NCBI GenBank assembly: GCA_964199315.1 | Contig: OZ116698.1 | Location: forward strand, 21,390,001-21,454,000 | Reading direction: 5' to 3' | Length of the DNA stretch: 64,000 nucleotides | DNA from: Orbicella franksi | Lineage: Eukaryota | In this document: positions 42,287 through 64,000 of the stretch, in pieces | How the letters are laid out: each line of letters opens with the position of its first letter | How positions within the stretch are numbered: position 1 is the stretch's first letter | Notes under the pieces: generated by a model | Seen by the model: the letters and a program-made list of their open reading frames with translations, nothing else | Databases searched by the model: none | Told to the model about the DNA's origin: nothing | Program-made: the position numbers and the translations under genes

Positions 42287-45200
42287 TTAGAAATAGTAGT
42301 TAGGTCCAGGTGACGAGGAATCGTTGCGTCTCTGTTGGTAGCTTGTGCTGCTGCTGTACACGTGAACTGTGTTTGTCACAGATGAATTTCCTCCTGAATA
42401 AGCTGTTTGGTCATCAGCCTGTTAAAGAAGAAGACATTTTCACAGGAAGCAAGGAAACAGTGAACGGTGCAAGTAATTTCCGGCATAAGACTAACACCCA
42501 AATTGTGAGCTACTGTTTGTGACGCGCAATTAATCATAATCAAAATCGTAGTCTACTTCTGTTTAATAAGAGAATGCTCCTGGAAAAAAATACTTAAGGA
42601 GCTAACCATGGTATCTAACTGAACGGAAAACAGAGGTCGGCCAATGTTTTCTAACCAAAGAAGGTAATGACTTGGTTTTATACGAGTATTTCCCGGCACG
42701 TAACACCGGCTACACGTGTTTGTTCCGAGGTATAAAAAGGTCGCATTTTAACTCCTGTACAACTCTTGAACCACAACTCTTGTGTCGCTGGTATGATTTC
42801 TGGCGATAGTTTGGATAAAACAAGTCTTTGTGTGTGTGAAGGACATTCATGTTACCTCCTGCATGACTTCAGTTTTCCTGTCATTCAAGTGATCCAGCTT
42901 TTCACCCAGTTTCTCAAACTCTTTCTCCAGTCGATCATTGTTTGATTGTAAGGTGTCGTTGTTAGAGTACTTTGAACTTCGATCGGAAGCCTTTAAACAG
43001 AATAAACACTAAAAGAGTTAAACATGCATATATTGATTGAATAGAAGATTTTGCTGGTGTTTCCTATTGGAAAGTACAAAAAAATAATCGTTAGAAATGC
43101 AGGTATTTAAAATAGTTTTTGAGAATCTGACAACCCCGCGCCCCTCACCCCACGGGGGATTACAACACTTTAAGGGGCGGTTTCTAAGCCAAGCCACATT
43201 TGTTCTGCTGGGAAGTAATGATGTCGGCTTGGTTCTTGGTGAATGAAATCTTCGTTTATTCTAAAGACATCACTCCCGCTACAGTGTATTCAAAGCATTA
43301 GGAATTTCGAAAGACTATTTCCGACATCCTTGGAGCAAAATTTTTTAAAGAAATGGGTTTTTAAATCATTTAAAAATCGAACACAATGGTTTCGAGCAAC
43401 GCCAGCCATCACGAAAGGTGTCAAGTTGACACTGAAATCACGAGTGCTTATTTCTCCTCAGACGGGAGCAACGCATTCCAGACGATAACTACAATTGTTC
43501 ATGAAGTCAGCAAAGATAAATCAAAGGTACCTGATGATTTTTTTCTTTTTCATAGTCCGTGTTTTGCTTATTTTACCGCCTAAGATTAATTAACAATTAT
43601 TCCATGAAACCGCGTTGGATATGAAGTGATAAATAACCAACGAGCGCGTAGCGCGAGTTGGTTATGATCACTTCATATCCAACAAGGTCGAATGGAATAA
43701 TTGTTTTAGTATATTCTTAATCGGGTTTTTGCCGCCGATTTTTATTTCAACAATTTTACAGAGCGGAAAATTTTTAAACTTGGCGCACTGTTTTCCATAT
43801 AAGGTAAAACTCCGACTAATGGCTCATAGTCGGAGTTTTTGAGCCAATCAGAGAGCTAGAAATGCAATAGTCGGAGCTGAGAATATACTAATATGTAAAT
43901 GGTTTGCCATTGCTGCAACTGCTTAAAGTAAGCTTACATATATAGCTAACATGTATGCAGGCGATTACATGTTCGTTTAAGTACTATTTTCCAAGTTTTT
44001 GCTTTTTTTCGTAGGCTTTGATATTTACTTCTGAAAGTTATACTGAAACAGTTGTTCGTCAAAGGGGGAGTGAATAACTGACATTCCCTTCGCCGAATAA
44101 TGACCAATAATTTGTTAAATAAGTTCTTGCTCTAGTGTACCTGAATTATAATGCCATTTATATCTCCCTTTTTGAACTATTGCAATGTCTGCTTCGAAAT
44201 CCATATGAACAAACTGTCCTTTATTTATCAGGCCATTCCTCGATTATTAAGTTTGCTTATTTTGAGCTGCTCGTCATTGTTATGGCTAATAAAAAGGGGG
44301 TTACATTCTCAAAAAGCAGCTTCACAACCTTTGTTGCCCGCGGCATTTACATTTTCATTCAGCCGCGTTCGCCAAAACCCTTGTTATTATTCCACTGGCA
44401 CTTGGTCTAATATGTGCTTAAGGCATACCGTAATTTAACGGTACGATTTTAAAGTACATGTATTTACCTTTTGATCTCCGTTGGTGTGTGGTTCAAAGAA
44501 TGACACAGGAGGTTTTGAGGCTGTTGCTGCATTCAACTCCTGCGCAGTTTTCAACACTGGACAATTCTTTGCACTGTCCCACTGGACGAGCTCTCTGTTG
44601 TAGAACTGGGCCTCTTTTGTTGCGATTTTTAACTTCTCGTTTTTGTGTCTTAGTTCTTGGAGTTCTCGTTCCAGGAGACTTTGTTCTTGTCTTCTTGGAC
44701 TCGTCGCTTGCGGCTCATTCTTAAGCGTATTGATGTCTCTCCCAAGGCTATAGGCAATCAGTTGTTGTTCGGACAAGACGCGTTGAAGTCGCGTCTTGCT
44801 TTCCTGGAGCTCGAATATTTCGCTTCTTAAGGTCGACAAGGTATTCTCATAAGTCTTCCTTTCGTCTTGTGATCTCCTGTAAAATTCTTGTTCGAGGAAG
44901 ATCTTCAGCTCTTTAGTAATCTTTTGTGTGTTTTGCTCGATTTCCATTTTCTCGTGCTCGAATTGGTGCTCCAGCTTGCTTTTCTCCTTCTTAAAGTGTT
45001 CTTCTAATTCTGTGACCTTTCGTTCTGCCTTAGCAAGTTTATCTTTTAGCTCGGCAATTGTTGCATCTGTTGTCCTCTGATAAGCTTGAACAACTTGCCT
45101 GTTTTCTTCGCGTAGTCGGGTCACGAGTTCTTGTTTTCCTCTTTCGACTTTGTTCTTCCATTCTGCCATGTCCGCTTCGTATTTCTTCTCTAGCTCTCGT

Positions 45201-48200
45201 TTTTCCCTCGAGAAGGAGTCGGAAAGATGCGTCTTTTCTTCTCTCAGCTTCGAAAGTTCTCGGGACATAGCCTCGAGCGTGACATTTAACAATTCTTTCT
45301 CATGTTCCAGTTTTCCTGACAGTTCATCTTTGTCTCTCTGGCTTTGTTGAAGTAAAGCATCCTTCTCTCTTAACAGCATCTCGTTCTGCGTCCTCAATTT
45401 CCTTTCCTCGTCCAGCAACTGCTCTTTCTCTGTGCGGAATTCTTTCTCCAGTTTGTAAAGGGAATCTTGCAGTTCCTTCTCACGAGTTGACACTTCCGCT
45501 GTTATCTTAGCCTGGTATTCAAGACGGAGTTTCTCTTCCATTTCCTCTCTGTAGGTTTTAAATTTTGCCTCCATATTCAACTTGTCTATTTCAGAACGTT
45601 CTATGAGTTCAAGCCTGTGTTTTTCTCTCACATCTGTCAACTTCATTTCTAACTCATACTCTATCTTTCGGCGTTCTTCAGTATAACGGTAGGTCAATTG
45701 CTCTTTGGTCCTTTCAATCGTCCTATCTAAGTCGTGGATCCTGCTCTCCAGTTCCGACTTGTTCCTTGTTAGGGTAAGTATCTCGGAGTTATACCTCTCC
45801 TCGATTTGAGTATACCTCTTTTTCTCTTCCTGTATTCTTTTGTTGTAGTCCTCGATAAGCTGCTTCTTTTCTGCCAGCAATTGCTGTTGCAGGTCGTTCT
45901 TCTCCTTTTCAAGTTCTTTCCGTACCTTCTCTATCTCCTTGCTGGTAACCTCTCTGAAGCACTGCTCGCGCTCATAGCGAACTGTGTTTATCTCGTGTTT
46001 GTAGGTTTGTTCGAGTTGGTTCAGTTTTCTTTCACACAGTTCTCTTTCATTTGTTGCTTCTTCTTTCAAATCCTTTAACTGCTTTTCGTAATCTTCCTCT
46101 AAAGTTTTCTTTTCCCTTGTAAGAGTTTCTCTTTCTTCTCGATGTTTGAACTGGATCTCGTCTGTTTTTCGTTTCCATTCTCTGCTCTTTTCTTCAAGAA
46201 TGTAAGACTTCTGTTGCAGTTCTGATCTCAACGTTTCAGCCTTCTTTCTTTCAGTCTCGTACTTCTCCATTAAGCTTTGTAGCTCAAATTTGAAATGCTC
46301 CTCGTTTCTTTTCTTTTCTTCAGCAGCACACTCGACAGAATCTTTGAAGCGTCTAATAACGCTCTCTTGCTCACTAATGACCTTTTGCAGTCGTTCCACT
46401 TCCCCAAGTGCCTTGTCTTTTTCACTGACGAATTTTCCCCTTTCGGTCTCGTGAGTCTTTTTGAGTTGTTCTATCTCGCGTTTAGACGTTTCCTCTGAGT
46501 CTGAAAGCTCTTTAGCAAGTGAATCTAATTCTTCTGTCAGCCTTCTGTTCAGATACTCAAGCTCTGTTATCTTTAATTTTAAGTCGCCGTTTTCTTGGTG
46601 AAGCTTGTTCTCCTTGGCTGTCAAACTCTCAAGTTGAGAACGTGAGCGGAACATTTCGTTGAGCATCTCACGGTTTGCTATTTCCAGCTCCACAGAAACC
46701 TTTAACTTCGTCTCGTAGTCTTTTATTTTCAAGTTGAGCTCGTTAATCTCCGCCTTATTTTGCTGTTCATTCTCGTTAGCAAGTCGTTCAGCCTCTTCTA
46801 ATTGCAAACGCAACTGTTCTGATACATTATTCAACTTTCTGTTTTCGTCTTCAAGCTTCTCAATTTTGCTTTTAAACGCGAGGAGTTCCTTCTCCCATTC
46901 TAGATTTTGTCTGGTAGCTTCCTCTTCGAGTCTTGCCACAGTTAACGTCAGCTCTCCAACCGTCACAGTAAGCTCCTGCTTCTCTTTTTCCAACATCTCA
47001 TTAGTTGATGTCTGATCTTCCAGTTTCTTTTTCAAACTAGCCACAGCATCCTCGTGTTCACTTTTTCGGTCATTCATTTGTTTTTCGTGACTGTTCTTTA
47101 AATCTGTCATGTTGTTTACATGTTTTTCCTCGGCATTGCTGTACTTTCTTTTCCAATTTGTCACTTCCCTCAAAAGCTCTTGAATTTCATTATGTAGCTT
47201 GCCTTTCTCCTGGACTTCTTTGTTCAGCTCGTCTTGAAGTTTCGATACCTGTGACTGACACTTCGATTCTGTCTCCTTTCGCTCTTTGATAATCCGTTCT
47301 TCGTAATTACTTATAATCTCCTTCTTGGTCATTTCAAGACTTTGTATCCGACCAAAGAGACCCTTCTTTTCCTTTTCCAACTCGGAGATTTTTTGCTTTA
47401 GCGCGGCTACCTGAGCATCAAATTCTTCCTGACTATCTGTTAGGTTGTTTCGTACTCGATCCAAATCTTTTTCTGTTGCTGCCAGTTGCACGTTTTTCTG
47501 TTCAAGCTCTTCTTTCATCTGCCCAATAATTTCCTTGAGATTGGCCAGTTCTCTCTCATATTTGATCTTATTGTCTTCCATCCACTTCTCTCGTTTCTTT
47601 GTTTCTTCTTTCAGCTCAGCTGTTTCTGTTTTATGACGAGCAGTTTCTTCTTTGTTCTTCCTATCCAGATTTTGGCAACTTTCTGCTAGTCTCTCGTTTT
47701 CTTTTGTAAGCTCTGTTATCTTCAGATCATTCTGGTTTTGCAACTCCCTGATCTTGCTCTCGAGATCTCTTACGGTTTGCTCTAGTTTAGAGATGACAGC
47801 CTCTTTTTCGCTTTTCAGTTGCTGTAACTTCTGGTTGTGTTGGGTCTTTAACTGTTCTATTTCCTTTCTGAATTGTTTTTCGAGCTCGAAATTCTCTTTT
47901 TTGAACTTTTCAGTCATCTCTTCCTTCAAGGCTTTTATCGTTGTCTCATACTGCTCTCTTAATTTTAATGTTTCTTTACGGAGTTTGTCAAGCTGTGCTT
48001 GTAGTTTCTTTTTCTGCGCCTCGAGCTTGTCTTTTTCCGCTGTAAAATGGGAATTTCTCTTCTCAAAATCTTGAAGCAAATCTGTAATCTTCATTTCGTA
48101 CTTCTTCACAATTTCGCTCTGTCTCTCGATTAGTTGTTGTTTTTCATGGTCGAAGTTTTCTTCAAGCTCGCTCTTTTCTTTGTCACACTTCTCTTTTAAG

Positions 48201-50620
48201 GTGGTTTTAATTTCTGTGATTTTAGCCTTGTAGGTCTCTTCTATTGTTGTACATTTTTTGGTCAGTTCTTCTTCTTTCCTTGAATGAATCTCTTTTAAGG
48301 CTTCTTTTTCTTCCCTTAGTTTGTCCAGTTTTAATTTCAGGTCATCTTGCAAATCGGTTATTTTCTTTTCGTACTCAGTTACAGTTTGTTCGTGAGTTTC
48401 GGTTAACTGATTTCTTTCATCAGCAAATTCCTTTTCCGCGTCTTCCTTTTCCTTCTCATATTTTTGTCGCAGTTCTTTCTTGGTGTCTTTTATGAGCTGT
48501 TCATACTTATCGATACTGTTAGACAACTCTTCCCTTAAACCTTGAATCTTCTCTTTGTACTTTTCCTCATGACTCTCCATGGCGGCTTCTAAATCTGCCA
48601 ATTTCTTCTCGTATTTCTCTTTGATTCCAGCTATTTGTTCTTCGTATGCTTTCATTGTGCTTGCATTGGAAGCTTTCAGTTCCTCTATCTGTTTTGAAAA
48701 GTTTGATTCTAGTTCTGTCTTTTCTTTGTTGCACTTTTCAGTAATTTCTTCTTTAAGCTCCTTTATTTTCAATTTATGCTGTTTCTCTGACTCAGCCATT
48801 TCTTGTCTTAATGCCTCTATTGCTTTCTGGTGTGACTCCTTTAAGCTCTTCCATTCATTTTCCATCTCCTCGACTTTTGCATCCAGTTCTTCTTGGAGAA
48901 TGACAATCTTTTCTTCGTATTCCTTTACCACTGCATTGTGTGATTCTATCAAGGTAGTCTTTTCTTTGGCCAATGTTTCTTCCATTTCACTCTTTTCTTT
49001 ATTGAATTTTTCCGTCATCTCGTCTTTCGCATCTTTCAGTTGTTTCTCATGACCCTGTTTCAATGCCAGTATTTCTTGTTCCAGTTTTTCGATGTTGGTT
49101 CTATTGGTCTCTTCCAGTCGTTCCTTTTCTTTCTCTATCTGAGCTATCTTAACTTCGTATTCTTGCTGCATGCTAGTGATTTTGGTTTCATAAGCTTTGA
49201 TCTCCATCTTATGACCTTCAATCAGTTCTTCTCGCTCTTTCATAAAGTTTGCTTCAATCTCGTCTTTCTCTTTTTCCAATTTTTCTAACAGCTCTTGCTC
49301 CAGAACTTTCATGTCTTCTTTGTCCTTTTGTTCAAGGGTCGTAAGCTTCTCCTGGCACGATTCAATTTCCGCAGCATGTTTATCTATTAACTGTGTTTTC
49401 TCTGCCTCCAATTTCGTAATAGCCAACTTGTTTTCCTTTCTTATTTCTTGGATTCGGACTTCACTTTGCTGGATGAGTTTCTTGTATTTGGCGATCAATT
49501 CTTGCTTTTCTGTATCGAACTCGTTTTCCATATCATTCTCCTTCTGTATGTACTCCATCTTTAGCTTATCCTGAAGTTCCTTCATCAATAAGTTGTGGTT
49601 TTCTTCAAGCTCTTTGCACCTCCTCTTCAACTCTGCTATTTCCTCCAAAGAACTATTGTAACTTGCCTCAAATTTATCCTTCTGAGTTTTGAGTTGTTCT
49701 AACTGTTCTTCGTATTGCTGAGTGATAGAAGTTATCTTAGCCTCGTATTCTTCTAGAGCCTTTTCGTGTGCTGCTATAAGCGACTCTTTCTCTTTTGTGC
49801 ACGCAGCTTCCATCTCACCCTTTTCTGCTTGGAACTTTTCCGTAAGCTCAATTCTCAAGTTGGCCAGCATTTCTTCGTATTGCTTTTCAAGAGCAGAGCA
49901 TTTCTCGCGCAGTGTTGTTACCTGTGTAGTGAGGCTAGCATTTTTCTTTTCTGATTTTTCTTTGTCGATTTTTAGTTGCCCTAGCTTCGTTTCGTAATCT
50001 TGCTGAATCTGCACTATCTTGATCTCATATTCCTTTGTGCTCTTCTGATATGTCTGCAACAAGGCCTCGTTTTCCGCTCGCAGAATCTGTATCTGTTCCT
50101 CGAAATTATCTTGCATTTCATCTTTTTCGCTCGAAAACCTTGCCTCCATCTCTCCCTTCTCCATCTTGCACTTGTTCGTGAGCTCTCTCTTTACATCTTC
50201 AATCATTCTAAGATTCTCTATCTCCATGGCGGAAATTTTCTGTTTGAGTCGTTGAACTTCTCTTTGGGACTCATTGTACTTTTTCTGCCAATCGTCTCTC
50301 TCTATTTTAAGTTGCCCGAGTTTGACTTCGTAATCCTGGATGATCTTTGTTTTGTTAAGCTCATATTCGGTGACAGATTTTTGGTACATATCGTTAAGGG
50401 CTTTCTTCTCTCCTTCCAGCGTTTTTATCCTTTGCTTGAGGGACTCTACTTCTGCACTGTTATCCATTGGAATTGTTCCCACGACCTCCATGTCCCAAGT
50501 TCCCCCTTGGTCTTCCATTGGCATTTCGTTGGTGACCACAGAGTAGTTAGTAGGCTCTACGTAGTAAGGACCTCCCCAACCATCTATTGGTTGTGACTCA
50601 TGAATTTCGACTCCAGACAT
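42287..50620 (-). CDS. Giant coiled-coil protein B (about 2139 aa), no recognisable catalytic domain
   Basis: Exon 44468-50620 (2051 codons, donor AAG|GTAAAT), exon 42856-42990 (ASDRSSKYSNNDTLQSNNDRLEKEFEKLGEKLDHLNDRKTEVMQE) and terminal exon 42287-42418 (ADDQTAYSGGNSS...PGPNYYF*). All junctions are phase 0. E/K/Q/L-rich sequence. Confidence 0.85.
43592..43870. mobile_element. Palindromic interspersed repeat in a gene B intron
   Basis: Hairpin 43592-43705: AACAATTATTCCAT..TTGGATATGAAGTGAT..ATAACCAAC / GTTGGTTAT..ATCACTTCATATCCAA..ATGGAATAATTGTT. Confidence 0.7.
47840..50386 (-). repeat. Nine degenerate protein-level repeats of 91-94 aa (first unit 112 aa) in gene B
   Basis: Recurring H/Y-x6-YE-x-KI...E(L/M)TEK(F/C)xxEKxE(L/M)ExxFxxE(K/R)xxL pattern. 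Unit lengths counted as 112, 94, 94, 91, 91, 91, 91, 91, 94. Confidence 0.75.
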
Positions 50621-51698
50621 CTCGGTTATTTTCTTGCTAACTGAATTTAGACGATGGCAAAAAATTTATACGTGGATTCAGTAAATTTATAACGATCGTT
50701 GCAAATAGCATTATTTATTTAGAATCATTATTCTTAATCTTTGCAACGATATTCTAAAAATAGGTTGGTGTACCCTGCTACTCCTGAGAAATCCAATGAG
50801 TTAATGGCTTAAAGGGACATAGTGAGCTGGCGCACATGCTCATTAGATACCATTTTATAGCTAATTTCCAAACTGTTTTTAAGCAAATATGAAAAAATAA
50901 TATCATAGGATGACCAAAAGCACACTCAAAAACAGATTTTTCAGTAAACGATTGAAAATCAAGTTAAACACTGCGAAGATTGAAGCGGATTTCTAGATGA
51001 ACTCGACGGGTATCTTTGATTTTAGGTTGAGCTGAACTCTTTTCAGAAAAAAAGTGTCCAGGTCAACGCGATCCCAAAGCTGAATGTGTCCCTTAAATTG
51101 ACCACATCGCGCTGTTACATATTTTAAATAGCATATCTGCGCAAAAGCAACCATCAGATGTAATGTATGAAAAAAATCAAATGTCGCCAACATCTTAACA
51201 CGTACAGTGTATTCCACTAAAATCTTTTTTTTCGGTCCATCACAAATATCAAGGTTTAATGGAGGGCTTACAGTTAGAGATAGGTCTATGCTGAGATATA
51301 TGTTTGATTGCATCTAAATATTTCATGGTAAAATGGTTTTTAAAAAAAAGATTTTTAGAAAGGAAAACGTCAAAAGAAAATTTAAGTGTTGAGATTAACA
51401 ACAAATATTTTGTCTGAATATTTCATTAACCATTGATAAACAGTTGCTTTTTAAACAAGTATGTTCTGCGGACTAATTTTCGAGATAGGAAATGAGTACC
51501 TGTACTTTGAAATATTGATTGAAATGGGCATATTAATAAGACATTCAAAGCTAACCTCGAACCATTTTTACTCCTTCAGCTATACCAAAATCCTAACCCT
51601 AACCTATTTCGTGACATGTAAAATGATTATGTCCCGTTATATTGTACAAATGCTATACTGATGAAGCCAAAGCTTTTCGCATATTGTAGCTAACTTAC

Positions 51699-51980
51699 CT
51701 GAGTTAAAGTTCTGGTGTTCCTTCTTTAAATTTTGATTCCTTGGCACTCTTTTTTGCGCACTATAGCTACATCTTTATCAAAACTCTCTTATCAAATGCT
51801 TTGGAAATTCAAACTGTTAAGAAAGACTCAGTTGTTTGAAACTCACGGTAAACAGCGGACAAAAAGGTCGACTCTGCTGTTACAACTGGAAAGGCTTGTT
51901 GCAGGATGTAAACAGTTCGGTTACAATTTATGTTAATATTTTTAGCGGTACCAAATTAATACAAGACATCAGCCAATCAG
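51699..51980 (-). promoter_or_regulatory. Candidate promoter and 5' UTR exons of gene B
   Basis: Donors CC|GTGAGT (51846) and CAG|GTAAGT (51698), acceptor GCTATAG near 51761, acceptor TTCAG at 50641 (20 nt upstream of the ATG), and a CCAAT element AGCCAATCAG at 51971. Motif-based inference only. Confidence 0.35.
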
Positions 51981-53159
51981 AATAGCGTTTGAATTCCCCT
52001 TATAACAGGTCACGCGGTGCTGTCACTTGATTATATGAATAATGATGATAATGTATTACATAAGCGCGCGGGGACTGCCTGAACCGTCAATGAAGGTTGA
52101 AAATTTCTCAAATTTCTATATTGAATCATTTTTTAATTTGTTTTTCTGATGATGAAATACGTGACGGTTTTAACAAACTTTTAAACTGAGACTGGAAGAG
52201 AAATATCTGCCAACTGAACCTCATGCAATCTAATTGAAAGCCGTAGGGTATTAAAAATACGTGAAACCACAAAGTCCTGGGGACATTTGGAAGAATAAAC
52301 TAAAGCCAGTTGCTACTTTTGCTTTCCTTCCTGTTAAGGACGTTACGGAGCTTCCTCTGTACATCTGTATCATTACCCATTAGCCGGTACCATTACTGTT
52401 CCTACTCAAGGGTATAATTTCTCATGTTGACTGGTTGGTCATGATGTTATATTAAAGGGAGGTAATTGCTATCTAAAGGGGCGGTACCGGTTTCTGGATT
52501 TAGACTACAGGTGGTTTGGTTAATTCTAATTGAACCCCAGCCAAATCAACCATCCAGTGGTTAATCCTCTCCACAACTGAGAATCTGAAGTAACATATCA
52601 CTATGTAGTCCAATTACCACCAACTGACGCGTTTCCGATGAGCGGACGCTGCCTCGTACGTTTTCAATACAAATAATTAGTTTTTCGTTTTGTGAGTCCA
52701 TTGAAGAACTGTAAAATCTTTAGAGTTCGCGCTCTAATAGAAACTGATTGATGTTGTTAATGAAACGATTGTTGAAGGGGGACAAATTGACGTCTAAAAC
52801 GAGCCGATAATGAACAAGGAAGGTGTTCGCAATTACACTTTGATATCTCCCTTTGGAAAATAAGGAAAAATCTTATCGGCGTTTTCCTAACGGTCATTGG
52901 CAAAACTGAAAACGGAATGTTTTTTAAAAAAAAATTATAATAAGGTTGGGCTGATACCTCGCACTCGCTCCAAACCTTTCCGTACATCCCAGTTAAAGCG
53001 GCTTAGGGCTGAAACTGTTTTCGGTTCAAGAACTGTGAAGGGCAATGAAAATTTGTTTGGGGCCGAAGTGTTACATCTTGCCGGGCCTATCTTGGTCTCT
53101 GCACAAATAAGCGACGTGAAGTATTTCGTCTTCCCCTCGATGGGGTGTTAGTCCTTCAT

Positions 53160-53290
53160 AGGGTTACCCACAACATTAAAATTCGCCGGTACCCATTTAT
53201 CCACCTGGGGAGAGAGAGGCAATGTGAGAGTAAAGTAACTTGCCTAAGAACATGAGGCAGTGACCCCTGCCAGGGTTCGAAGACGCACTC
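53160..53290 (-). mobile_element. SINE fragment, reverse orientation
   Basis: GGGTTACCCACAACATTAAAATTCGCCGGTACCCATTTATCCACCTGGG..GTGAGAGTAAAGT..CTTGCCTAAGAACA..CAGGGTTCGAA is the reverse complement of the SINE head and body. Confidence 0.7.
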
Positions 53291-54827
53291 CTTGAACAGC
53301 AGGTTTAAGCTTATAAGACTTAATTAGATGTGGAATTGGAATAGAAAATGCTCCAATTATTTGAATTACTTATCTGCAGAAAACATTCCCAGAAATTAAT
53401 TAAGTACGTAAAAAAGTAATTGATTGATTAATTGATTGATTGATTGATTAACTCGAAGATCGATAGCTACACTAGAGAAGACAAAATTACATCGATGTGA
53501 CTACTCTGAAAACCCTTTATTTACCTTGAATAATAATAAAAGTAAAAGATGTCCGATAGCGCTTAACAGTGAACAAATTTCTTAACTGGTTACCTAAGCT
53601 ACAAATTACAAATTATAAAACAATAAATTACAATCATATTATAGCAAAATTTCAATTCAAACAATTCAATTAGAAATGCAATAAAATCCTTGACAATAGG
53701 ATGGCCTACGACTCAATTATACAATTCAATTATATATTTAAAGATATCAAGTTAATTTCAATAAAACAAGAAAAAAATAACCCATTATATTTGGAGACTG
53801 TCAATCAGAACTTGACTTCTAAATATACTAACTATTACTAGCGTAATATACCAAAAGAACTACAGTGGCTTATTTGTTGAAAGGCATTTCATAGTCAAAT
53901 GTCTCAAGTTTCTAACTGAAACACAGGCATTTACGGAATCAATTCAGCAGCATTTTCACCCTGCATAACAAACCAAAAAAACGAATCTAATCAGTCTTAT
54001 ATTAGTCAAACTAGTCGGTTTTAAAGCGTGTACCTCAAGGAACACGTAATTTACCATCTCTAAGAAAATTCATTTTCTATTGCAAAAGGTCACGAACCAC
54101 GGCTTTCTGATCTCTGTTTCTGTTCGGTTTCAGTTTTATTAATATATTTTGACAAACAAAAAAGTGTTCTACTACACCCTCACCTTCCCATAATGGCCAG
54201 TTCTGTACAACGGACGCTTCCCTCTGTCCACAAGGTGGCTGTTGTGGAAAGGTTCGACTGTATATTTATCAAGATAGTAAAACAACTCTTCAACAAATCA
54301 ATTTTAACTGACTTACATTGTTAACCCTAATTTCATAACTTCCTTGACGCCTCGTTTTAAAACACTGGATCAAGATATTTATAACATTAATCGGGGCAAC
54401 AAGCAAAGTTTCAGGATATCCCCAAAAAGGTAACCGAAAGATTTTCGATTGTAATTATCCTATCAGAAACATCAAGAATCATGGCTGAAGTGACACCTAA
54501 GCTCCATACCATAGCAAGAATTCTTGTGTTCAATATTTTCCCCAAAAAGAGTGCCCCAAGGCAATTCTTGGACAATAAAGTCCATCTGAGGACGGTATTT
54601 GTCTCTCGAGTGAAAAAGATCTTTTAATTGCTGTATACACTACCGAAAGGTAAAGATATCATTTTCTGGCGCTATTTCTTAAGATTAGAAATCTGTCGGA
54701 GTAGCGCGCGGGATTTGTACTTAAATAGATTCCTAGTTAATACCCACTTGCGACAAATTTTATCACGAAACGTGATGGCGTCACTAGAGTTGACGCAAAG
54801 CTATTCAACACACCCATAAGAAATACA

Positions 54828-54969
54828 TAGAGCGATTTTCAATTGAGTGTCGTAAAACCAAAACCAAAACCAATTAGACTTCTCAGGTAATCTCAAACTG
54901 TAGTAAAACCAAAACCAAAACCAAAGTAATTGTCTAATTACTTTCGACATTCAACTGAAAACCGCTCTA
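54828..54969. mobile_element. Short MITE with TA-flanked inverted ends
   Basis: TAGAGCGATTTTCAATTGAGTGTCG versus CGACATTCAACTGAAAACCGCTCTA; internal AAAACC repeats. Confidence 0.75.
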
Positions 54970-55673
54970 TAGCGTTAAACTAACATATCCTATCCCAAAA
55001 GGAGCGGAATGCGCTACTTCTCCTTCTTTTTTTATGTCTTAACAGCTGCAAGACACGTATTTCATCTTCACTTTCCATCATGAAATACATGGTAAAGTAA
55101 ACAACCTAATCTATATAACCTCCTCAAATTACTGTAACTATCCAAATGGACTCGCTCAGTAGAACAAAATGAAGTATTTTGCAGACGCACCTCTTTAAAA
55201 AACATTCTCAAAAATTGAGACAATAAATAGCAAAAGCGTATCAACATGTAAAGCTCGAACAAAGCGTTATAGCTTAATAAAATTTCCTACAGAAAAATAA
55301 ATTTAAATAATCTTTTAACGTCAGTGATACAATCAAAATTCCCCTTGGAGATCATCTTTGCAGAGCGTGTCAAATCTTATGTCCGGTGGTGTAGTTTTTT
55401 GACTCTACTTCCAATAATTGACTACTAGCTTTAGTTCCTTGTCATTTTTATACATCATTACTACGTTAAAATCCCGCTCTTTGTCACTGCGAGACTTAAA
55501 TGGCGCCTTTTTTGTGCATTTGATGAATCTGAAGTCATTTCAGGTGGCATTGTTGGTACTAATAGCGATAATTCTCATGTGATATTTTTATTCTAGTTTT
55601 TTTTTTTTCCTGAAGAATAATTCATTCTTGTCTTCGTCCTATGTAGCTAAGCCGGAGCTTAAATTGTTGATAA

Positions 55674-58600
55674 TCATGTTAGCTGGGGAGTCGATTGCTG
55701 ATTCTCTCCTGCACTAAAAGAAGTACTTTTCATGTCTTCTGAAGTGAAATTCCCACCCTCGGTACTCTTTACAAATCGCGTATTTTCGAGATGGCTATTG
55801 GCCGAAACATTTCTGCTTCCCAGAGAAGTTCCCATTGCTTGGTTGAACGAGTCAGTGATTGTTGGCTCACTTTGCCGCTGGCCAGTACCCGTGCCTCCAA
55901 CGACTCCTCCGCTGGATAGTCCACCAGAGCCTGCCAATGGCCTTCCAAGTGCATCCGAAATGCTTCCTGTTGCGTGCATGGTGTATCGAACCCTTTCTAG
56001 TATATCGCCATACGATTGTCCAGTACCTATCAAAGACTGGCCATTTGTTGTGTTAAATATGGGACAAAGGTTTGGCTGAAACACCCTGCTCTCAGATCTC
56101 ATGCTACCAATGTTTGGACCAAGTGAAAAGTCGTTAGCTCCTCTGATATCTGACTCTCCGTAGTATCCTAGATTTGACCGTAGCACATCGTTTCTGCTTA
56201 TGCTCTGTAGACGAACGTTGTAAAATACATTACGTAAGTGTTGACGCGACAAACCAATTTCAACATTACATAGTAGGTGCAATGTGTTACTTAATGTATT
56301 CGAACCTCAGCGTTTTTGACTTGATAAAGAAAAAGTAGACATGCATTCTGCTTCTTGTAACTTTGGTAGACAGAGAAGAGAGATTAAAACGAGTCTAAGA
56401 TTTGTTTAGTTATATAAAGTGCCTCACCCACTCCTCCCTAGTAGCCGCCTCCAAATCCTTGTTACGTGTTTCCAAAGTCCTCAGTCTGTCTCCCATAACT
56501 CTGAGTTCTCTCTCAAGCCTCTCCGTTTTGGCCTGAAGTGTCATGTTCCTTTGCTCCATTAAGTTAATTTGGTCTTTATACTGTCGAACGTCGGATTGTG
56601 ATGACTGATGGGATATCTCAGAGCTAGCCTGTTGAGAAACCAAATGAAAAACCTTTCAAAAAAGCATCATCAAACACTTTTAAGCAACTTCGTCTGAGTG
56701 ATTTATTAGTGAACTCACCAAAGCATTTTTAATTGTGTTTGCCATCATATGTTTCCCAATAACATCAGTTCTTTTCTCCATTTCTTCCCTCGCTTTGCTA
56801 AGCTTTCGTTTCATCTCCAGTTGTATTTTCTCCAATTCGTCTTCAAGCTCTTGTTTTTCGTTTTCAAGAGTTTCTTTCAATTCAGTTCTTTCTCTCTTCA
56901 GTTTATTAATTTCTTGCTGAAGTTCTCTAATCTTCTCCTCCATTGGGCGTTTCTCGCGATCTACTCGCTCGAAGAACTCTTGTTCCATTTGAATTACTAC
57001 TCTGTTTCTTGACAACTGCTCTGTTCTTGGACTGGAATTTCCCGACAACTCGTTCTTTAGCAACTTTTCCTGAATTTCTTTTCTCTGATCTTGCAAGAAA
57101 GAGATTTGCTTTGTTAAGGCCTTTACTGTTTGCTCAAATTTTTGTTTTTCATCATTCAACGTTTTTCTGTATTCCCGTTCCATTATCATCTTTAACTCTT
57201 CCTGGCTTTGGATGAGGGTCTTTTCGGCATTGCGCTTTTCTTCCAGGTATCGCGTTTTCTCACTCTTGTGTTGCATTTCCATTTCTTTGAACTTCCGTTC
57301 CGTTAATGACATCTTTCGTCTAAATTCATCGATTGTTCCTTGTAATCTTTTCCTTTCAGAAGCCAACCGTCCTTCGTTATCTTCTCTTATCCGAGATAGT
57401 TCGTCATCTTTATCTCTTGCAACTCTATCGCGCAAATTGTTCTTTTCTACCTCATGAATTCTGGTAAGCTTCTCCACTTCCTTTTTGTAACAGTTCTTTA
57501 ATTGTTGTTTCTCGCATTTAAGAGCATTGACTTCCTTTGTGAGAGCATGTATTGTTTCCATTAGCTTCCTTTTCTCGCTTTGCATCTGGTGTTGCAATTC
57601 TCTTTTTTCCTCCTCAAACTTTGAATGTTGATCTCTCAGTTCACCTTGGAAATTTTGCCCCCTTCTACGCATTCTCTCATTATCGTCCGTACCATATTGC
57701 TTTCTTTGTGGAACCGACATATCAGCCATGTTGCCAGAAGCATTTTGATTTCCATGCTCAACCTGGAAAACATTTCCTTGTCTTGGCATCCTGCTTTCTT
57801 CGTTAAAACTGTATTGATTCTTCTGTGTGCCAACAACAGCATCAAAACCACTTTGATTGCCCTGTTCAACTAACCAATTTTGCCTTGACATCCGAGTATC
57901 ATCGTCAAAATCATATCGGTTCCTCTGTGTGGGTGACACGCCAACCATAGCTTTCGAACCATTCCGTTCCGCAGTGCGAAGTCTTTCCTCGAAGTCGGCC
58001 CTTTCTTTGAACAGCTTGTCACTAAGAAAGTCTTGGTCTTTTCTGTGTTTTCTCTTCAAGTCGTCTATTTCGTCTTCAAGCAAACGACGATAGCTTGTGA
58101 GCTTCTCTTTGGCCTCTCTCACCTCGTCCTCTAACTTTGCCTTTTCCCTTGAGGCACGATTTAAAATTTCTCTCTTTTCTTCGTTGAATCTTCTCTCCAT
58201 TTCTTGAATTGTAGTCTCTGGCTCCCCTTCCCTAGACTGTCCATTATAGTTTTCTCTTCTCGTAATACTGGATTCGAAAGCCATTGTATCCCTTGCTCCG
58301 TTATCCCTTATTCCACTGGTTGATAGTGGCCCCCAGACTGTGTTTTTGACATTGCTATCATTTCCATATGTTCCTGGGGCATTTGCCGACCTTGCATCTC
58401 CCCCCCGGATGCTAGACTCAACGTCTCGAAGCCGCTTTTGTAGACTGCTGTTTTCCTTTTCAAAGTAATCTTCTAACGACTGTTTTTCTCTCTGAAACTC
58501 TTCTGACATTCGTCGCTTTTGTGCTTCAAGGTTCCTGAGGTCATCTGCATGCTTTTTATTGACATCTCGTAGCATTGCCTCTAGGTTTTCAACTTCTTGT

Positions 58601-61600
58601 TTTAATTTGTCATCTTTAGAATGAACAACCTGGCTTCTAAAATCCCCTGATATACCATATGAGTTTAAAGCATGGGAAGACGATGTCCCGTTTAAGCCTC
58701 TACTCTGGGGCCCAACGTTCGCCGATATTTGGTCTTCTAACCGCTGAATTTTCTCTTCAAGTTTTCTCGTTGTGTCTGTTTGTACTTGAAGTTTTTTCTC
58801 GCAAGCCTCTCTCATTTTTGTTACTTCTTCTACAGCTCTTGCTTTTTCGTTTTCGTAATTTCTTACCAAAGAAATCTTTTCCTGTCTGAAGGAATCTTCA
58901 ATATCTTGGATTTTGCGGGTGAAGCGTTCAGTTTCGTCTGTAAGCTTCCTGTTACGCCTCTCAACTTCGTCTAGAGTACGAGATAAGTGATCAACCTCGC
59001 GAGTTAGATTCCTTTGAGCAGCCAAAAGTTCATCTCGCTTTCGAGTCAGATGGGTGACCTCTTCGTCAAGATCGTCGTTTCTCCTCTTTAGCTCTTTGTT
59101 TCGCTTGGCTTCTTTTTTCAAATCCTCGAGTTTCTCCTGAAGGTCTACTATTTCACTTTGTAATTCCTTTTGCGTTATTGCCCGTTCGTTGTTATTTCTT
59201 GAAGGCACCTTCGTTTCATTTCGATTCGAAGAAGTCTCATTATTCTTTAAATTGTCAAAAACATCTTCGTTACGACCATTTCTGTTACCAGAGAGAATTT
59301 CATTCATCTTGTATAAAAGTTTCTTGTTTTCCATCTCTAGTGTTTCTCGCCGTCGAATTTCGTCGGTTAGCTGTTGCTGAAAATCACTGTTACCCCAACC
59401 AGGTGTTGTATTCACTTCCCTTTGACCGCCTGTAAAGCTGAAATTATTTTCCTGGTTGGAAAAGAGCCCACTTTTAAAAGCTTCAGCTTCTTGTCTGCGT
59501 TTAGTTTCCTCTATCAGCGACCTCTGCAATTTGCTTATTTGTGTGAGATATTCCTGGGTAATTTCGTTAGCTTGTCTTTCTATCATGGCCTTAATTTCCA
59601 TTCTTTCGCGAGTGAAATCCTCTTGCAATCTTTGGTTTCTTTCTTTAAGGTCCATGATATCGCTTAGCAAGTACTTCATATCACTGGCGAGTCTCAGCTT
59701 ACTTCTTCTCTCATCTTCGTACCTTTGACGAGCCATTTCAGTATCTTGGTATTCCACCTCTATCCCATGATATCGATCTCTGCCACTGGTTGATGAAGTT
59801 CTCAGCTCTTCTCTAAGTCTACCCCTCTCTTCTTCCAGCCGTTCTATTTTGGATTTTAAGTCTTTTTCTTGATTCTTTGCAAGCATTGTATTTGAAAGCT
59901 GAGTTTGTAGTCTCATTTCCATTCCTTGAATTTCGTCTGAATGTCTTTTCTTGAGGTTTGCAATCTCGTCGTCCTTCTCTTCGAGGATTCGTTCGTTGTC
60001 TTTTAAAGATCTCTCCAATTTCCGGGCTTTCTCTTTCAAACGAGACATCTCTGTTGTTGATTCCCTTCTTATCTCCTCTATCCTCTCTTGTTGATGCTTG
60101 TTTGTTCTTTTCATCTCTTTTATTGTTCCCTCTTGCCTCGCTCTTTCTCTTTTTAGCTCAATAAATTCATTTTCCCTCGCTAAACCAAGCTCGATATTTT
60201 TCAGACTTTCTTGGCTCTCGTTCTTCTTGCTCAAAACGTCAAGAATTGCTCTAAATTCTCTGTTTTCCTTCTCTAATACACGGATGTTTTTCCTATATTC
60301 TAGGATCTCTTCTCCGTCATCACCTTGGTCTAATGTCATACTACTTATGTCTAATGTGTGGGTCGTCATTCTTGACTTTGCCCAGTCATTCAGTTTGCTC
60401 TGCAACAACTCATTGTCCCTTCTTAGGGAGCGAATGGTTTCATCAAATCGATTAATACTGTCCAACATTCCTTGATATCTTTCTTCAAGATAAATCTTTT
60501 CGCCGTTTTCATTTCGATATTCTTTTTCAAACTCTTCCTTCTGCCTCTTCTCTGCTTCATATGCTTTTTCCAAACGTTCCTTCTCACGCTTTATTTGATC
60601 ACATTTAGACTTGTAGTACTCATAGTCAGCTGACATCTGGTTTGAATTTCTAAGAGTTTCTCTTGCACCGCCATGGATATCACAAACATAGTTGTAACCA
60701 CAGCCACGCACATCGCCGTATTCGTCCAGTGAAACCTCGCGTGAACTTGTGATGTACTCTATCAAGCTGCTGTAATCTTTTGCGATATCGCAGCAATGGT
60801 GGTGATCTTGAGGAATGGTTAATTGTTCTCTGTGTGAAATTAACTCTGTTTCTTTTTCATGGCGTAGCGCATCATAACGTGCTTCTAGGAACTCTTTGTC
60901 TTTCTCAAGTCTGCTAATCCTCTCCACAAATTGATCTATTAGTATGTCATGATGGCAGGTTACTTTTTGTGTTACGGGAGACCTGATTTCCTGTGTTTGT
61001 TTAGACGTATTTGTTTCATCTTCGGTATCCTTATCAACTTCTCCTGATTTCGGCAGGTCCTTCTTGCTCTCGATTTCTTTTCCTGGTTCTGTAATTGTTC
61101 CATTCGGTTCTCCAGTCGTTTTTGTAGTTACAGTGTTCCTATCATGTTTTTTGTCATTCTCCTGTAAAGAAGTATCTTGGATGACTTCACTGGAATCAAT
61201 GAGGCCTACTTCTTCTATGCTCCAGCTTTGGTCAGGGTCTTTCTCGTCTACAGTTCCAATGACTTCCACACTCCAGTTTTGTTCTGGTTCTTTTTCTCCT
61301 ATCTCTCCTATTTTCTCTATGGTCCAAGTAGATTCTGTTTTATTTGGCACACCTGAATCCTCTAGTTTCTTTTCCGCAGGCAGCTTCTCCTCTTGAATGT
61401 CATTTGAGTCTAGTGGCATTTCTTTGACTTCAATCTCTTCCATGGGCAGTTGTTGTTCTTCACTAGAATCAATAGTACCTACTTCTTCTGTACTCCAGCT
61501 TTGGTCAGGGCCTTCCTCGTCTACAGTTCCAATGACTTCCACACTCCAGTTTTGTTCAGGTTCTTGTTCCCCTATCTCTCCTATTTCCTCTGTGGTCCAA

Positions 61601-64000
61601 GAGTCTGCGATATTTGGCACATCTGAATCCTCTAATGTCTTTTCCGGAGGCAACTGCTCCTCTTGAATGTCATTTGTGTCTGATAGCATTTCTTTAATTT
61701 CAATCGCTTCTGTGGGCAGCTGTTGTTCTTCACTGCAATCAATAGTACCTACTTCTTCTATATTCCAGCTTTGCTGCTCCTGTGTATCTACCCCTTCCGC
61801 AAACCCATTCATCTGACTACTTTGCATATACCCTGGAATTTCCTGCATGGACATTTTTTGCATAGCCATTTCACCTCCCGTAGGCATTTCTTGGACAGTC
61901 GTTTCTCCTCCCATAGGCATTTCTTGCACAGTCGTTTCTTCTCCCATAGGCATTTCTTGCACAGTCATTTCTCCTCCCATAGGCATTTCTTGCACAGTCA
62001 TTTCTCCTCCCATAGGCATTTCTTGCACAGTCATTTCTCCTCCCATAGGCGTTTCTTGCACAATCATTTCTCCTCCCGTAGGCGTTTCTTGCATCGTCGT
62101 TTCTCCCAGAGGCATTTCTTGCATCGTCGTTACTCCTCCCACAGACATTTCTTGCACAGTCATTTCTCCTCCTACAGGCATTTCTTGCACAGTCATTTCT
62201 CCTCCCATAGGCGTTTCTTGCATCGTCATTTCTCCTCCCGTAGGCATTTCTTGCATCGTCTTTTCTCTTCCCATAGGCATTTCTTGCACAGTCATTTCTC
62301 CTCCCATAGGCATTTCTTGCACAGTCATTTCTCCTCCCATAGGCATTTCTTGCATCGTCATTTCTCCTCCCATAGGCATTTCTTGCACAGTCATTTCTCC
62401 TCCCATGGACATTTCTTGCACAGTCATTTCTCCTCCTACAGGCATTTCTTGCACAGTCATTTCTCCTCCCATAGGCGTTTCTTGCATCGTCATTTCTCCT
62501 CCCGTAGGCATTTCTTGCATCGTCTTTTCTCTTCCCATAGGCATTTCTTGCACAGTCATTTCTCCTCCCATAGGCATTTCTTGCACAGTCATTTCTCCTC
62601 CCATAGGCATTTCTTGCATCGTCATTTCTCCTCCCATAGGCATTTCTTGCACAGTCATTTCTCCTCCCATGGACATTTCTTGCACAGTCATTTCACCTCC
62701 CATAGGCATTTCTTGCATCGTCGTTTCACCTCCCAGAGGCATTTCTTGCATCGTCGTTTCACCTCCCATAGACATTTCTTGCACAGTCATTTCTCCTTCC
62801 ATAGGCAGTTCTTGCATCGTCGTTTCTCCTCCCATAGGCATTTCTTGCACAGTCATTTCTCCTCCCATAGGCATTTCTTGCATCGTCATTTCTCCTCCCG
62901 TAGACATTTCTTGCATCGTCATTTCTCCTCCCATAGGCATTTCTTGCACAGTCATTTCTCCTCCCATAGGCATTTCTTGCACAGTCATTTCTCCTCCCAT
63001 AGGCATTTCTTGCATCGTCATTTCTCCTCCCATAGGCATTTCTTGCACAGTCATTTCACCTCCCATAGGCATTTCTTGCATCGTCGTTTCACCTCCCAGA
63101 GGCATTTCTTGCATCGTCGTTTCACCTCCCATAGGCATTTCTTGCATCGTCATTCCTCCTCCCGTAGGCATTTCTTGCATCGTCGTTTCACCCCCCATAG
63201 GCATTTCTTGCATCGTCATTTCTCCTCCCATAGGCATTTCTTGCACAGTCATTTCTCCTTCCATAGGCGTTTCTTGCATCGTCATTTCTCCTCCCGTAGG
63301 CATTTCTTGCATCGTCGTTTCTCCTCCCATAGGCATTTCTTGCACAGTCATTTCTCCTCCCATAGGCATTTCTCTCACAGTCATTTCACCTCCCATAGGC
63401 ATTTCTTGCACAGTCATTTCCCCTCCCATAGGCATTTCTTGCACAGTCATTTCTCCTCCCATAGACATTTCTTGCACAGTCATTTCTCCTCCCATAGGCA
63501 TTTCTTGCATCGTCGTTTCACCTCCCATAGGCATTTCTTGCACAGTCATTTCTCCTTCCATAGGCAGTTCTTGCATCGTCGTTTCTCCTCCCATAGACAT
63601 TTTTTGCACAGTCATTTCACCTCCCATAGGCATTTCTTGCATCGTCGTTTCACCTCCCAGAGGCATTTCTTGCATCGTCGTTTCACCTCCCAGAGGCATT
63701 TCTTGCATCGTCATTTCTCCTCCCGTAGGCATTTCTTGCATCGTCGTTTCACCCCCGATAGGCATTTCTTGCATCGTCATTTCTCCTCCCATAGGCATTT
63801 CTTGCACAGTCATTTCTCCTTCCGTAGGCATTTCTTGCCCAGTCATTTCTCCTCCCATAGGCATTTCTTGCACAGTCATTTCTCCTCCCATAGGCATTTC
63901 TTGCACAGTCATTCCTCCTTCAACAGGCGTTTCTTGTATCGTCATTCCTCCTTCAATTGGCATTTCTTGCATAGTCATTCCTCCTTCAATTGGCATTTCT
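55674..64000 (-). CDS. Giant coiled-coil protein A with Met-rich repeat N-terminal region; 5'-truncated by the window (more than 2670 aa)
   Basis: Frame is open from the window edge to 56719 (2427 codons, donor TTG|GTGAGT). Next exon 56428-56628 (ASSEIS...TLQAKTERLERELRVMGDRL..., donor TGG|GTGAGG), then terminal exon 55674-56204 (SISRND...PQLT*). All junctions are phase 0. Confidence 0.85.
61195..61775 (-). repeat. About 2.2 copies of a 270/273-bp (90/91-aa) acidic coding repeat in gene A
   Basis: The anchor CCAGCT (Ser-Trp codons on the minus strand) recurs at 61765, 61495 and 61222, giving spacings of 270 and 273 bp. Confidence 0.9.
61861..64000 (-). repeat. Coding 33-bp minisatellite, about 65 units visible, consensus QEMPMGGEMTV
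   Basis: Unit CAAGAAATGCCTATGGGAGGAGAAATGACTGTG repeated in frame to the window edge, with one 30-bp unit (MPLGETT) and no stop or frameshift. Confidence 0.97.

Follow-up and report, generated by a model that had tools for sequence, protein, structure and literature searches.

The 64,000-nucleotide window of the Orbicella franksi genome considered here (contig OZ116698.1, forward-strand positions 21,390,001 to 21,454,000) carries on its minus strand two neighbouring genes for giant coiled-coil proteins, hereafter gene A and gene B, which have in common a short peptide headed by a tryptophan, W-x-x-E-x-[VI]-G-[TE]-[IV]. In a preliminary description, made from the DNA letters alone, seven copies of this peptide in gene A and one in gene B, placed in both genes between an EMPM-type unit and the coiled coil, were taken for a binding motif that had been retained through the divergence of the two paralogues and amplified in gene A. 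A six-frame regular-expression scan of the window with W..E.[VI]G[TEL][IV] gives eight matches, seven in gene A and one in gene B, with peptides identical to those first read, and the looser W..E.[VI]G gives the same eight matches and no others. The pattern as it was first written fits most of the copies, the seventh carrying L at the [TE] position, and the count of seven for gene A is correct inside the window, the full protein having nine, two of them past the window end.

According to the list of open reading frames (ORFs) and the flanking genome sequence, the part of the gene A coding sequence that falls in the window occupies 56680..64000 and runs off the window end; the open frame reaches window-equivalent position 65412 (2910 codons), and its first ATG, at window-equivalent 65268, gives a protein of 2862 amino acids. 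From a short stretch at its N-terminus the protein passes into a Met-rich 11-mer array, then into two W units (i.e., units with the tryptophan-headed peptide), a second Met-rich array and seven W units; some 90 residues further on come a Cys/His-rich anchor (CHHDILIDQF...) and the coiled coil. The two extra units, WSVEEVGTI and WTIEKVGTI, lie past the window end between the two Met-rich arrays (G000:C1:21454055-21454131). The other seven, located by the six-frame scan, are carried by a 270-bp tandem repeat present 2.2 times (61185..61773, minus strand; Tandem Repeats Finder, 87% matches) and are, in protein order and all on the minus strand, WNIEEVGTI (61741..61767, type a), WTTEEIGEI (61573..61599, type b), WSVEVIGTV (61522..61548, type c), WSTEEVGTI (61471..61497, type a), WTIEKIGEI (61300..61326, type b), WSVEVIGTV (61249..61275, type c) and the terminal WSIEEVGLI (61198..61224), situated 92 residues ahead of the Cys/His anchor with which the coiled coil begins. 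The Met-rich acidic 11-residue array occupies 61852..64000 with about 65 units in the window (Tandem Repeats Finder, period 33 bp, 65.2 copies); its 11-mer, QEMPMGGEMTV, forms two arrays split by the two extra W units and continues to window-equivalent position ~65000.

The peptide, first described as a short linear motif, is not free-standing: an alignment of 25 W-bearing units from six proteins makes it the core of a 17-residue repeat unit, three of which, together with a 39-residue spacer, compose the 90-residue (270-bp) tandem unit of gene A. The consensus core is W-[ST]-hydrophobic-E-x-[VI]-G-T-[IV]-[DE], with [VI] and G in 25/25 units, [IV] in 24/25, E in 20/25 and T in 17/25, then [DE]-rich positions, and with a conserved Q two residues ahead of the next W; the 25 units having been picked by W and G, the invariance of both is partly by construction. 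Where position 4 is not E, it is K, A, Q or D, and A, K and Q occur there even in close orthologues. Three subtypes recur, namely a (WS-IEEVGTID-SSEEQQ), b (WT-EEIGEIGE-EPEQN) and c (WSVEVIGTVDE...DQS), the complete type-c 17-mer being WSVEVIGTVDEEGPDQS. Type c, represented by the third unit of gene A, is the type nearest to the unit of gene B and to the single units of the orthologues P0099, P0173 and P0004.

Gene B (44435..50620, minus strand, from the list of ORFs) encodes 2061 amino acids in one exon, laid out as a 56-residue acidic head, a long coiled coil and a C-terminal domain that defines the family discussed below. Its only W unit, WDMEVVGTI followed by P (50471..50497, minus strand, residues 42-50), is contained in an RNA contig and ends 7 residues before the coiled coil. 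The motif is directly preceded by VVTNEMPMEDQGG, just as the preliminary description had it; NEMPM (50516..50530, minus strand, residues 31-35; SEMPL in the Acropora orthologue P0001) is the single EMPM-like unit of the gene B head. Its resemblance to the 11-mer of gene A amounts to 4-5 residues only, and its top 10-mer scores in comparisons with other heads, 25-31, are weak.

That the peptide might occur at background frequency in acidic regions is an objection that fails on two counts, since gene B would be expected to hold 4e-5 matches from its own composition (analytic expectation) and since the genome at large offers no comparable carrier. A degenerate DNA pattern for the T-variant has 25 matches in the 497-Mb genome, 7 of them in genes A and B; nine of the remaining 18 were inspected and all lie beside stop codons or in non-acidic, non-coding-looking frames, and several of the others have stop codons within the matched letters. 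Judged by these sequences, genes A and B appear to be the only places genome-wide where the pattern has a credible reading frame. Protein searches of the same genome point the same way, the W region retrieving gene A alone and the gene B head gene B alone, with no third carrier. The peptide is thus non-random and, in this genome, specific to the two genes.

The persistence of the unit in other corals was followed separately for each gene. The only full-length orthologue of gene B found is P0001, from Acropora, which is 53% identical overall and shares a 90% cluster with the A. millepora protein. It keeps the motif as WEMEIVGTIP, where the only replacements, D to E and V to I, are both at x positions of the pattern and the codons of the V, G and T differ synonymously from those of the window gene B. 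Eight of the ten residues are identical, which places the motif in the top 13% of 10-residue segments, a modest enrichment. The orthologues of gene A were sorted into six lineages by the identity of their coiled coils. In the closest, P0002 and P0003 (coiled coil 84-86% identical to that of the window gene A), every W-unit type is kept, with copy counts that are lower bounds, both sequences being cut by assembly gaps (N runs) in the Met-rich array. P0173-P0175 have two W units (WSIEVIGTL and WSMEVVGTI) and a decayed third, and P0099 has one (WSIEVVGVV). At the other extreme, P0004, whose coiled coil is 45% identical, has about 38 strictly periodic units with the core DMEIIGTIEQQTPxQS, of which only the first four open with W and most of the later ones with C or S. 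No W units are found in the Acropora proteins P0092-P0098 (62% identical), which keep xIQEVGFVE[SG]GE or TIEEVGFVE within composite repeats of 57-69 residues that also contain EMP-like units, nor in the P0008 lineage (about 70 sequences, 61% identical), which has the same W-less variant. P0099 has both QEVGFIEGGE and a type-c unit, so that the W-less element corresponds to type a of the window and it is the type-c unit that was lost in the two lineages.

The number of W units in gene A therefore goes from 0 to about 38 across orthologues, and the claim of conservation stands for four of the six lineages, the W being absent from Acropora and the P0008 lineage. What cannot be upheld is an invariant W and E, as most P0004 units have C or S in place of the W and the E at position 4 varies. 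In all the lineages examined, the EMPM unit comes first, the W unit next and the coiled coil last, the order already noticed for the two genes. Heads are 60-69% identical and coiled coils 84-86%; when the heads of different lineages are compared, the best ungapped 10-mer is always the EMPM unit, the W unit or QEVGF, and it is the W unit in 9/15 lineage pairs (e.g., window gene A with P0173, P0173 with P0004, and A or B heads inter se). The last W unit is placed 86-114 residues before a CxHxILIDQF anchor in the window gene A, P0002, P0099 and P0173. Taken from the sequences, the pattern looks like that of an element conserved within a disordered head that otherwise evolves fast, and lost in particular lineages.

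Three further observations concern elements adjoining the W units. Of the head elements, three are conserved in every coral lineage compared, and the EMTIQEMPL core of the Met-rich 11-mer is one of them. In the array of P0004, the most distant gene A orthologue, 17/39 seventeen-residue segments start with Cys in place of Trp (CDMEIIGTIEQQTPxQS; P0004:467-860, locus L018), so that Cys, Asp, Met and Glu recur regularly in what looks like a cytoplasmic protein. The Cys/His-rich segment that opens the rod of gene A (CHHD..., HHHCC..., C..Y.C.IHG; ~60660-60960, minus strand, residues ~1437-1535) is a possible metal-binding module, and the distant A-like homologues P0027, P0029 and P0031 begin at this segment, with still richer Cys/His runs.

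The relationship between the two genes is less direct than their common peptide would suggest. They align significantly over their last ~200 residues only (29% identity, E = 3e-13), within a C-terminal domain of ~330 residues that defines the family to which both belong. A search with the profile of this domain (alignment A1) found 67 proteins among 1.84 billion, nearly all with the match at the extreme C-terminus and with lengths of 1000-7400 amino acids. The domain corresponds to no Pfam family, and a PDB sequence search with the profile gave only chance coiled-coil matches. Five family members lie within 0.5 Mb of contig C1 in this genome, with A1 E-values of 6e-132 for gene A, 5e-116 for gene B, 2e-82 for an 8123-codon giant and 1e-34 and 8e-31 for the others. 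The giant paralogue adjoins gene A on its upstream side (G000:C1:21463239-21464285, minus strand, and upstream; from window-equivalent ~73200 on), its orthologues P0005, P0010, P0012, P0016 and P0022 have 5500-7400 amino acids and no W motif, and the two remaining members are ~450-500 kb away on the same contig. An equivalent layout is found beside P0004, where the upstream gene is P0005 (7416 amino acids).

A phylogeny built on the C-terminal domain puts A, B and the giant each in a strongly supported clade of its own and does not make A and B sisters. No W motif was found in the other clades of the family, the orthologues of the giant included, and the distant A-like proteins start at the Cys/His anchor, with no acidic head. 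The EMPM-plus-W head is thus an addition of the coral lineage. The tree and the headless clades together imply that the head was either lost many times or passed between neighbouring genes, and retention and an exchange between tandem neighbours are equally likely, which makes the proposed retention through deep paralogue divergence doubtful. Any exchange between A and B must be ancient: by manual count, the unit of gene B and a type-c unit of gene A have 17/27 nucleotides in common, which speaks against a recent conversion.

Structure prediction describes the head of gene A as a disordered region in which the W units are the only strand-prone parts. The W region has a net charge of -53 over 211 residues, and its AlphaFold2 (AF2) model, with a mean predicted local distance difference test (pLDDT) of 44 and a predicted template modelling score (pTM) of 0.17, has strands on units 6 and 7 only; ESMFold2 gives a pLDDT of 35-42 for this region and for the gene B head. 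A different picture is obtained for 26 units of P0004, for which the AF2 model is all-beta and has a strand in each unit (mean pLDDT 70, pTM 0.59). This brings up the possibility that the W unit is a structural repeat, whose strands stack into a beta-sheet or a beta-solenoid rod in a homotypic assembly (A with B perhaps, or one chain of the coiled-coil dimer with the other) instead of binding an outside partner. The strict 17-residue period of P0004 and its one modelled strand per unit do recall beta-solenoid repeats, such as those of bacterial beta-helix adhesins or of the ice-nucleation type; the sole Foldseek matches of this model, though weak, are beta-helix proteins, and units 6 and 7 of the window gene A are paired by AF2 as a hairpin. 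However, AF2 without an alignment is prone to solenoid models from perfect repeats, and nothing in the PDB matches the P0004 model at E <= 0.001, the beta-helix matches being insignificant (E about 1). Unlike beta-solenoid proteins, these are cytoplasmic-looking coral coiled-coil proteins with mostly 1-9 units, and the W region of the window is predicted to be disordered. The period of 17 is strict in P0004, and in the window three units are adjacent; the pLDDT is 70 for P0004 and 44 for the window region. A repeat fold would need more than the one or two units of gene B, P0099 and P0173, a single hydrophobic strand every 17 residues and an acidic linker of 9 residues would make a poor solenoid coil, and a prediction of the complex of genes A and B gave no answer. 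All that is taken from these models is that the unit is strand-prone. We consider a structural repeat unlikely.

The comparison with known motif classes was approximate, regular expressions in the style of the ELM resource having been applied to 18 units from six proteins. None of the 18 fits the LC3-interacting region (LIR), the kinesin light chain (KLC) W-acidic motif, the parallel SUMO-interacting motif (SIM), LC8, AP2 WxxF, SxIP or FFAT (two phenylalanines in an acidic tract) patterns, and the peptide, which had not been recognised as a described motif, indeed matches none of the classes so compared. The LIR, or Atg8-interacting motif (AIM), is [WFY]-x-x-[LIV], with L, I or V at +3 from the aromatic residue and usually acidic residues before it. 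The W unit is like it in having a tryptophan in an acidic context with aliphatic residues after; yet its W is replaceable by C or S in P0004, and LIR/AIM was rejected, the residue at +3 being E in 20/25 units, otherwise K, A, Q or D, and never L, I or V. In the KLC W-acidic motif the W is directly followed by D or E, after L/M-type residues and in an acidic context. This class was also rejected, as the W of gene A precedes S, T or N, and in gene B (TWD) the residue two before the W misfits.

The nearest of the known classes is the antiparallel SIM. A SIM has three of four V/I/L residues (psi-x-psi-psi or psi-psi-x-psi) beside an acidic or Ser/Thr run, and the LC8 motif has a TQT or [IV]QVD anchor. 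If the W unit were a SIM, it would be multivalent in the manner of poly-SUMO readers, and it has indeed acidic flanks and a few members, all of type c (S-VEVI-G, SIEVV, SIEVI), that fit the SIM-like regular expression (4/18). The remaining 14 do not, including the unit of gene B and all of types a and b, and the SIM pattern leaves the invariant G and the conserved W and T unexplained, so that membership of this class is most improbable. As a kind of element, nonetheless, the W unit is like SIMs and the TQT motifs of LC8 in its strand-prone hydrophobic core, its acidic disordered region, its variable tandem copies and the dimerising coiled coil beside it, and unlike them in its invariant G, its conserved W and T and its confinement to two coral proteins. 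As far as the searches made here show, the motif and the family are undescribed, although short peptides or repeats conserved in disordered regions are familiar as a kind.

With thousands of residues of heptad-rich coiled coil, genes A and B resemble giant coiled-coil proteins, from which they differ in having no Pfam family at cut-off and a C-terminal domain without a solved structure. Pfam scans of both genes and of the orthologues P0004 and P0008 returned nothing above cut-off save 'Mucin-like' on the Met-rich array, a compositional match; KASH_CCD was among the sub-threshold matches. An identity with CEP290, the name borne by XP_044172675.1, was rejected, no CEP290 family appearing in those scans. 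Coiled-coil composition explains both this 'CEP290-like' name and the faint signals of ninein, KASH and FAM184. ESM Atlas, which relies on a language model, gives rootletin, ninein, FAM184 and SCLT1 as look-alikes of the rods, names that are again composition and not shown homology, and it has no usable match for the W region. The literature on XP_044172675.1, on Met-rich coiled-coil coral proteins and on 'CEP290-like' proteins in corals yielded nothing relevant.

The peptide is real, and it probably has a function. What we tentatively propose, giving it somewhat less than an even chance, is that the W unit is a strand-forming docking peptide of an undescribed class, displayed at variable valency in a disordered acidic head. 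The unit would become ordered upon contact with a partner, and gain or loss of repeats would set the valency, which is one in gene B, nine in gene A and from 0 to ~38 in the gene A orthologues. As both proteins are long coiled coils, even a single W unit would be presented at least in pairs, and if a partner exists, the unit would act similarly to strand-addition motifs. We infer all three components of this proposal, that is, binding as such, binding by strand addition and a role of the copy number in avidity, all of which the preliminary description had suggested; no partner was found.

Several results weigh against a docking peptide. The complex prediction run with the gene A W region (211 amino acids) and residues 20-70 of gene B scored 0.00 with both chains at a pLDDT of 35-42, which gives no verdict and counts neither for nor against the proposal. 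For gene B there is one full-length orthologue to compare. The W is gone from gene A in Acropora and the P0008 lineage and from most units of P0004, which means that the most anchor-like residue is dispensable in places. The seven copies in the window are not independent, being carried by a tandem repeat, and recent duplication accounts for much of the copy-to-copy likeness within gene A. Finally, nine motif codons and eight linker codons were compared between window 61198-61767 and loci L019 and L020; for close species and tandem copies, the proportion of nonsynonymous differences (pN) is 0.078 in the motif vs 0.133 in the linkers and that of synonymous differences (pS) 0.15 vs 0.41, and among close species the pN/pS of the motif is 0.51, vs 0.33 for the linkers. 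The motif codons also have fewer synonymous changes, which keeps their ratio from being the lower one; gene conversion between units or nucleotide-level constraint may be the cause. Constraint on the unit is consequently evidenced by its long-range persistence together with the synonymous-only changes of V, G and T in gene B.

These same data bear on another explanation, in which the W peptide has no function and is a remnant of labile low-complexity repeats in the head, of common origin or spread by head exchange, and free to drift and be lost. Such a history would be in keeping with the copy number of 0 to ~38 and the loss of W units in two lineages, with a pN/pS that, in close species, is no lower in the motif than in the linkers, with heads that evolve faster than the coiled coil and with the other family clades having no such head. 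It fits less well with a unit that persists where the coiled coils of gene A are 45-62% identical and the heads are otherwise unalignable, with the fixed distance of single units from the coiled coil, with the synonymous-only changes in V-G-T of gene B, and with the IEEVGF/QEVGF core that the W-less lineages still keep. A functionless remnant is accordingly, in our estimate, somewhat unlikely.

A bolder version of homotypic assembly can also be formulated. The units might be 'zipper' strands by which A-B and A-A heads co-assemble into a coral-specific fibrous scaffold, with a valency of 1 to ~38 units tuned in each lineage and a head module passed between neighbouring paralogues rather than inherited, and the Met-rich array beside the zipper may buffer metals or oxidants. 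This combination of claims is very unlikely as a whole; if it were true, it would amount to a new assembly code for coiled-coil filaments.

Both genes are expressed in adult colonies. RNA contigs from several poly(A) runs contain 0.63-0.81 of the sampled words of 56700-61700, in gene A, and both genes are present in the same poly(A) runs, the fractions of sampled words held for the two being 0.89 and 0.81 in X1, 0.56 and 0.66 in X5 and 0.46 and 0.53 in X7; the single-cell runs X6 and X8 hold both as well, as do the single-cell runs of study P3. Several of the RNA runs bear the label 'coral metagenome'. In the raw-read runs X23 and X24 there are no reads on the 5' part of gene B, only on a repeat. 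A poly(A) RNA contig of 5817 nt spans 49900-50640 and then 51699-51944 (minus strand), and this jump, together with the splice-site letters, indicates that gene B has a non-coding first exon of at least 246 nt (51699..51944, minus strand; RNA contig and in-frame stops) and a 5' leader intron of 1058 nt (50641..51698, minus strand, GTAAGT...TTCAG; RNA contig joint in run X1, depth 20.4), with the coding sequence in one exon. The acceptor of this intron is 20 nt upstream of the ATG, and the in-frame stops in the spliced leader make the ATG at 50620 the start of gene B.

The Acropora millepora NCBI model XP_044172675.1 (P0069) fuses the C-terminal half of gene A with gene B. The in-frame stops in the first exon of gene B argue against an A-B fusion protein through that exon here. 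In the intergenic stretch between the two genes (50621-56679), an ORF at 55674-56282 is similar to the Acropora linking exons, and minus-strand RNA contigs at 54106-54692 and 55078-55800 have a depth of 17-20, equal to that of gene B. Two other stretches, 53052-53248 and 54825-55021, show RNA word depths in the thousands in all runs, with reads that continue into unrelated sequence; repeats at 53409-53457 and 54898-54934 adjoin them. Both appear to be copies of some dispersed repeat with high expression and to belong to neither gene.

If the W unit is a docking element, it would offer a first approach to what this uncharacterised pair of giant proteins, restricted to corals, does in the cell; if it is not, it would illustrate cleanly that the turnover of repeats in disordered heads can look like motif conservation. 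The motif is testable with a 17-residue peptide, an easy reagent, and the natural series of 0, 1, 2, 9 and ~38 copies among corals constitutes a ready-made valency experiment.

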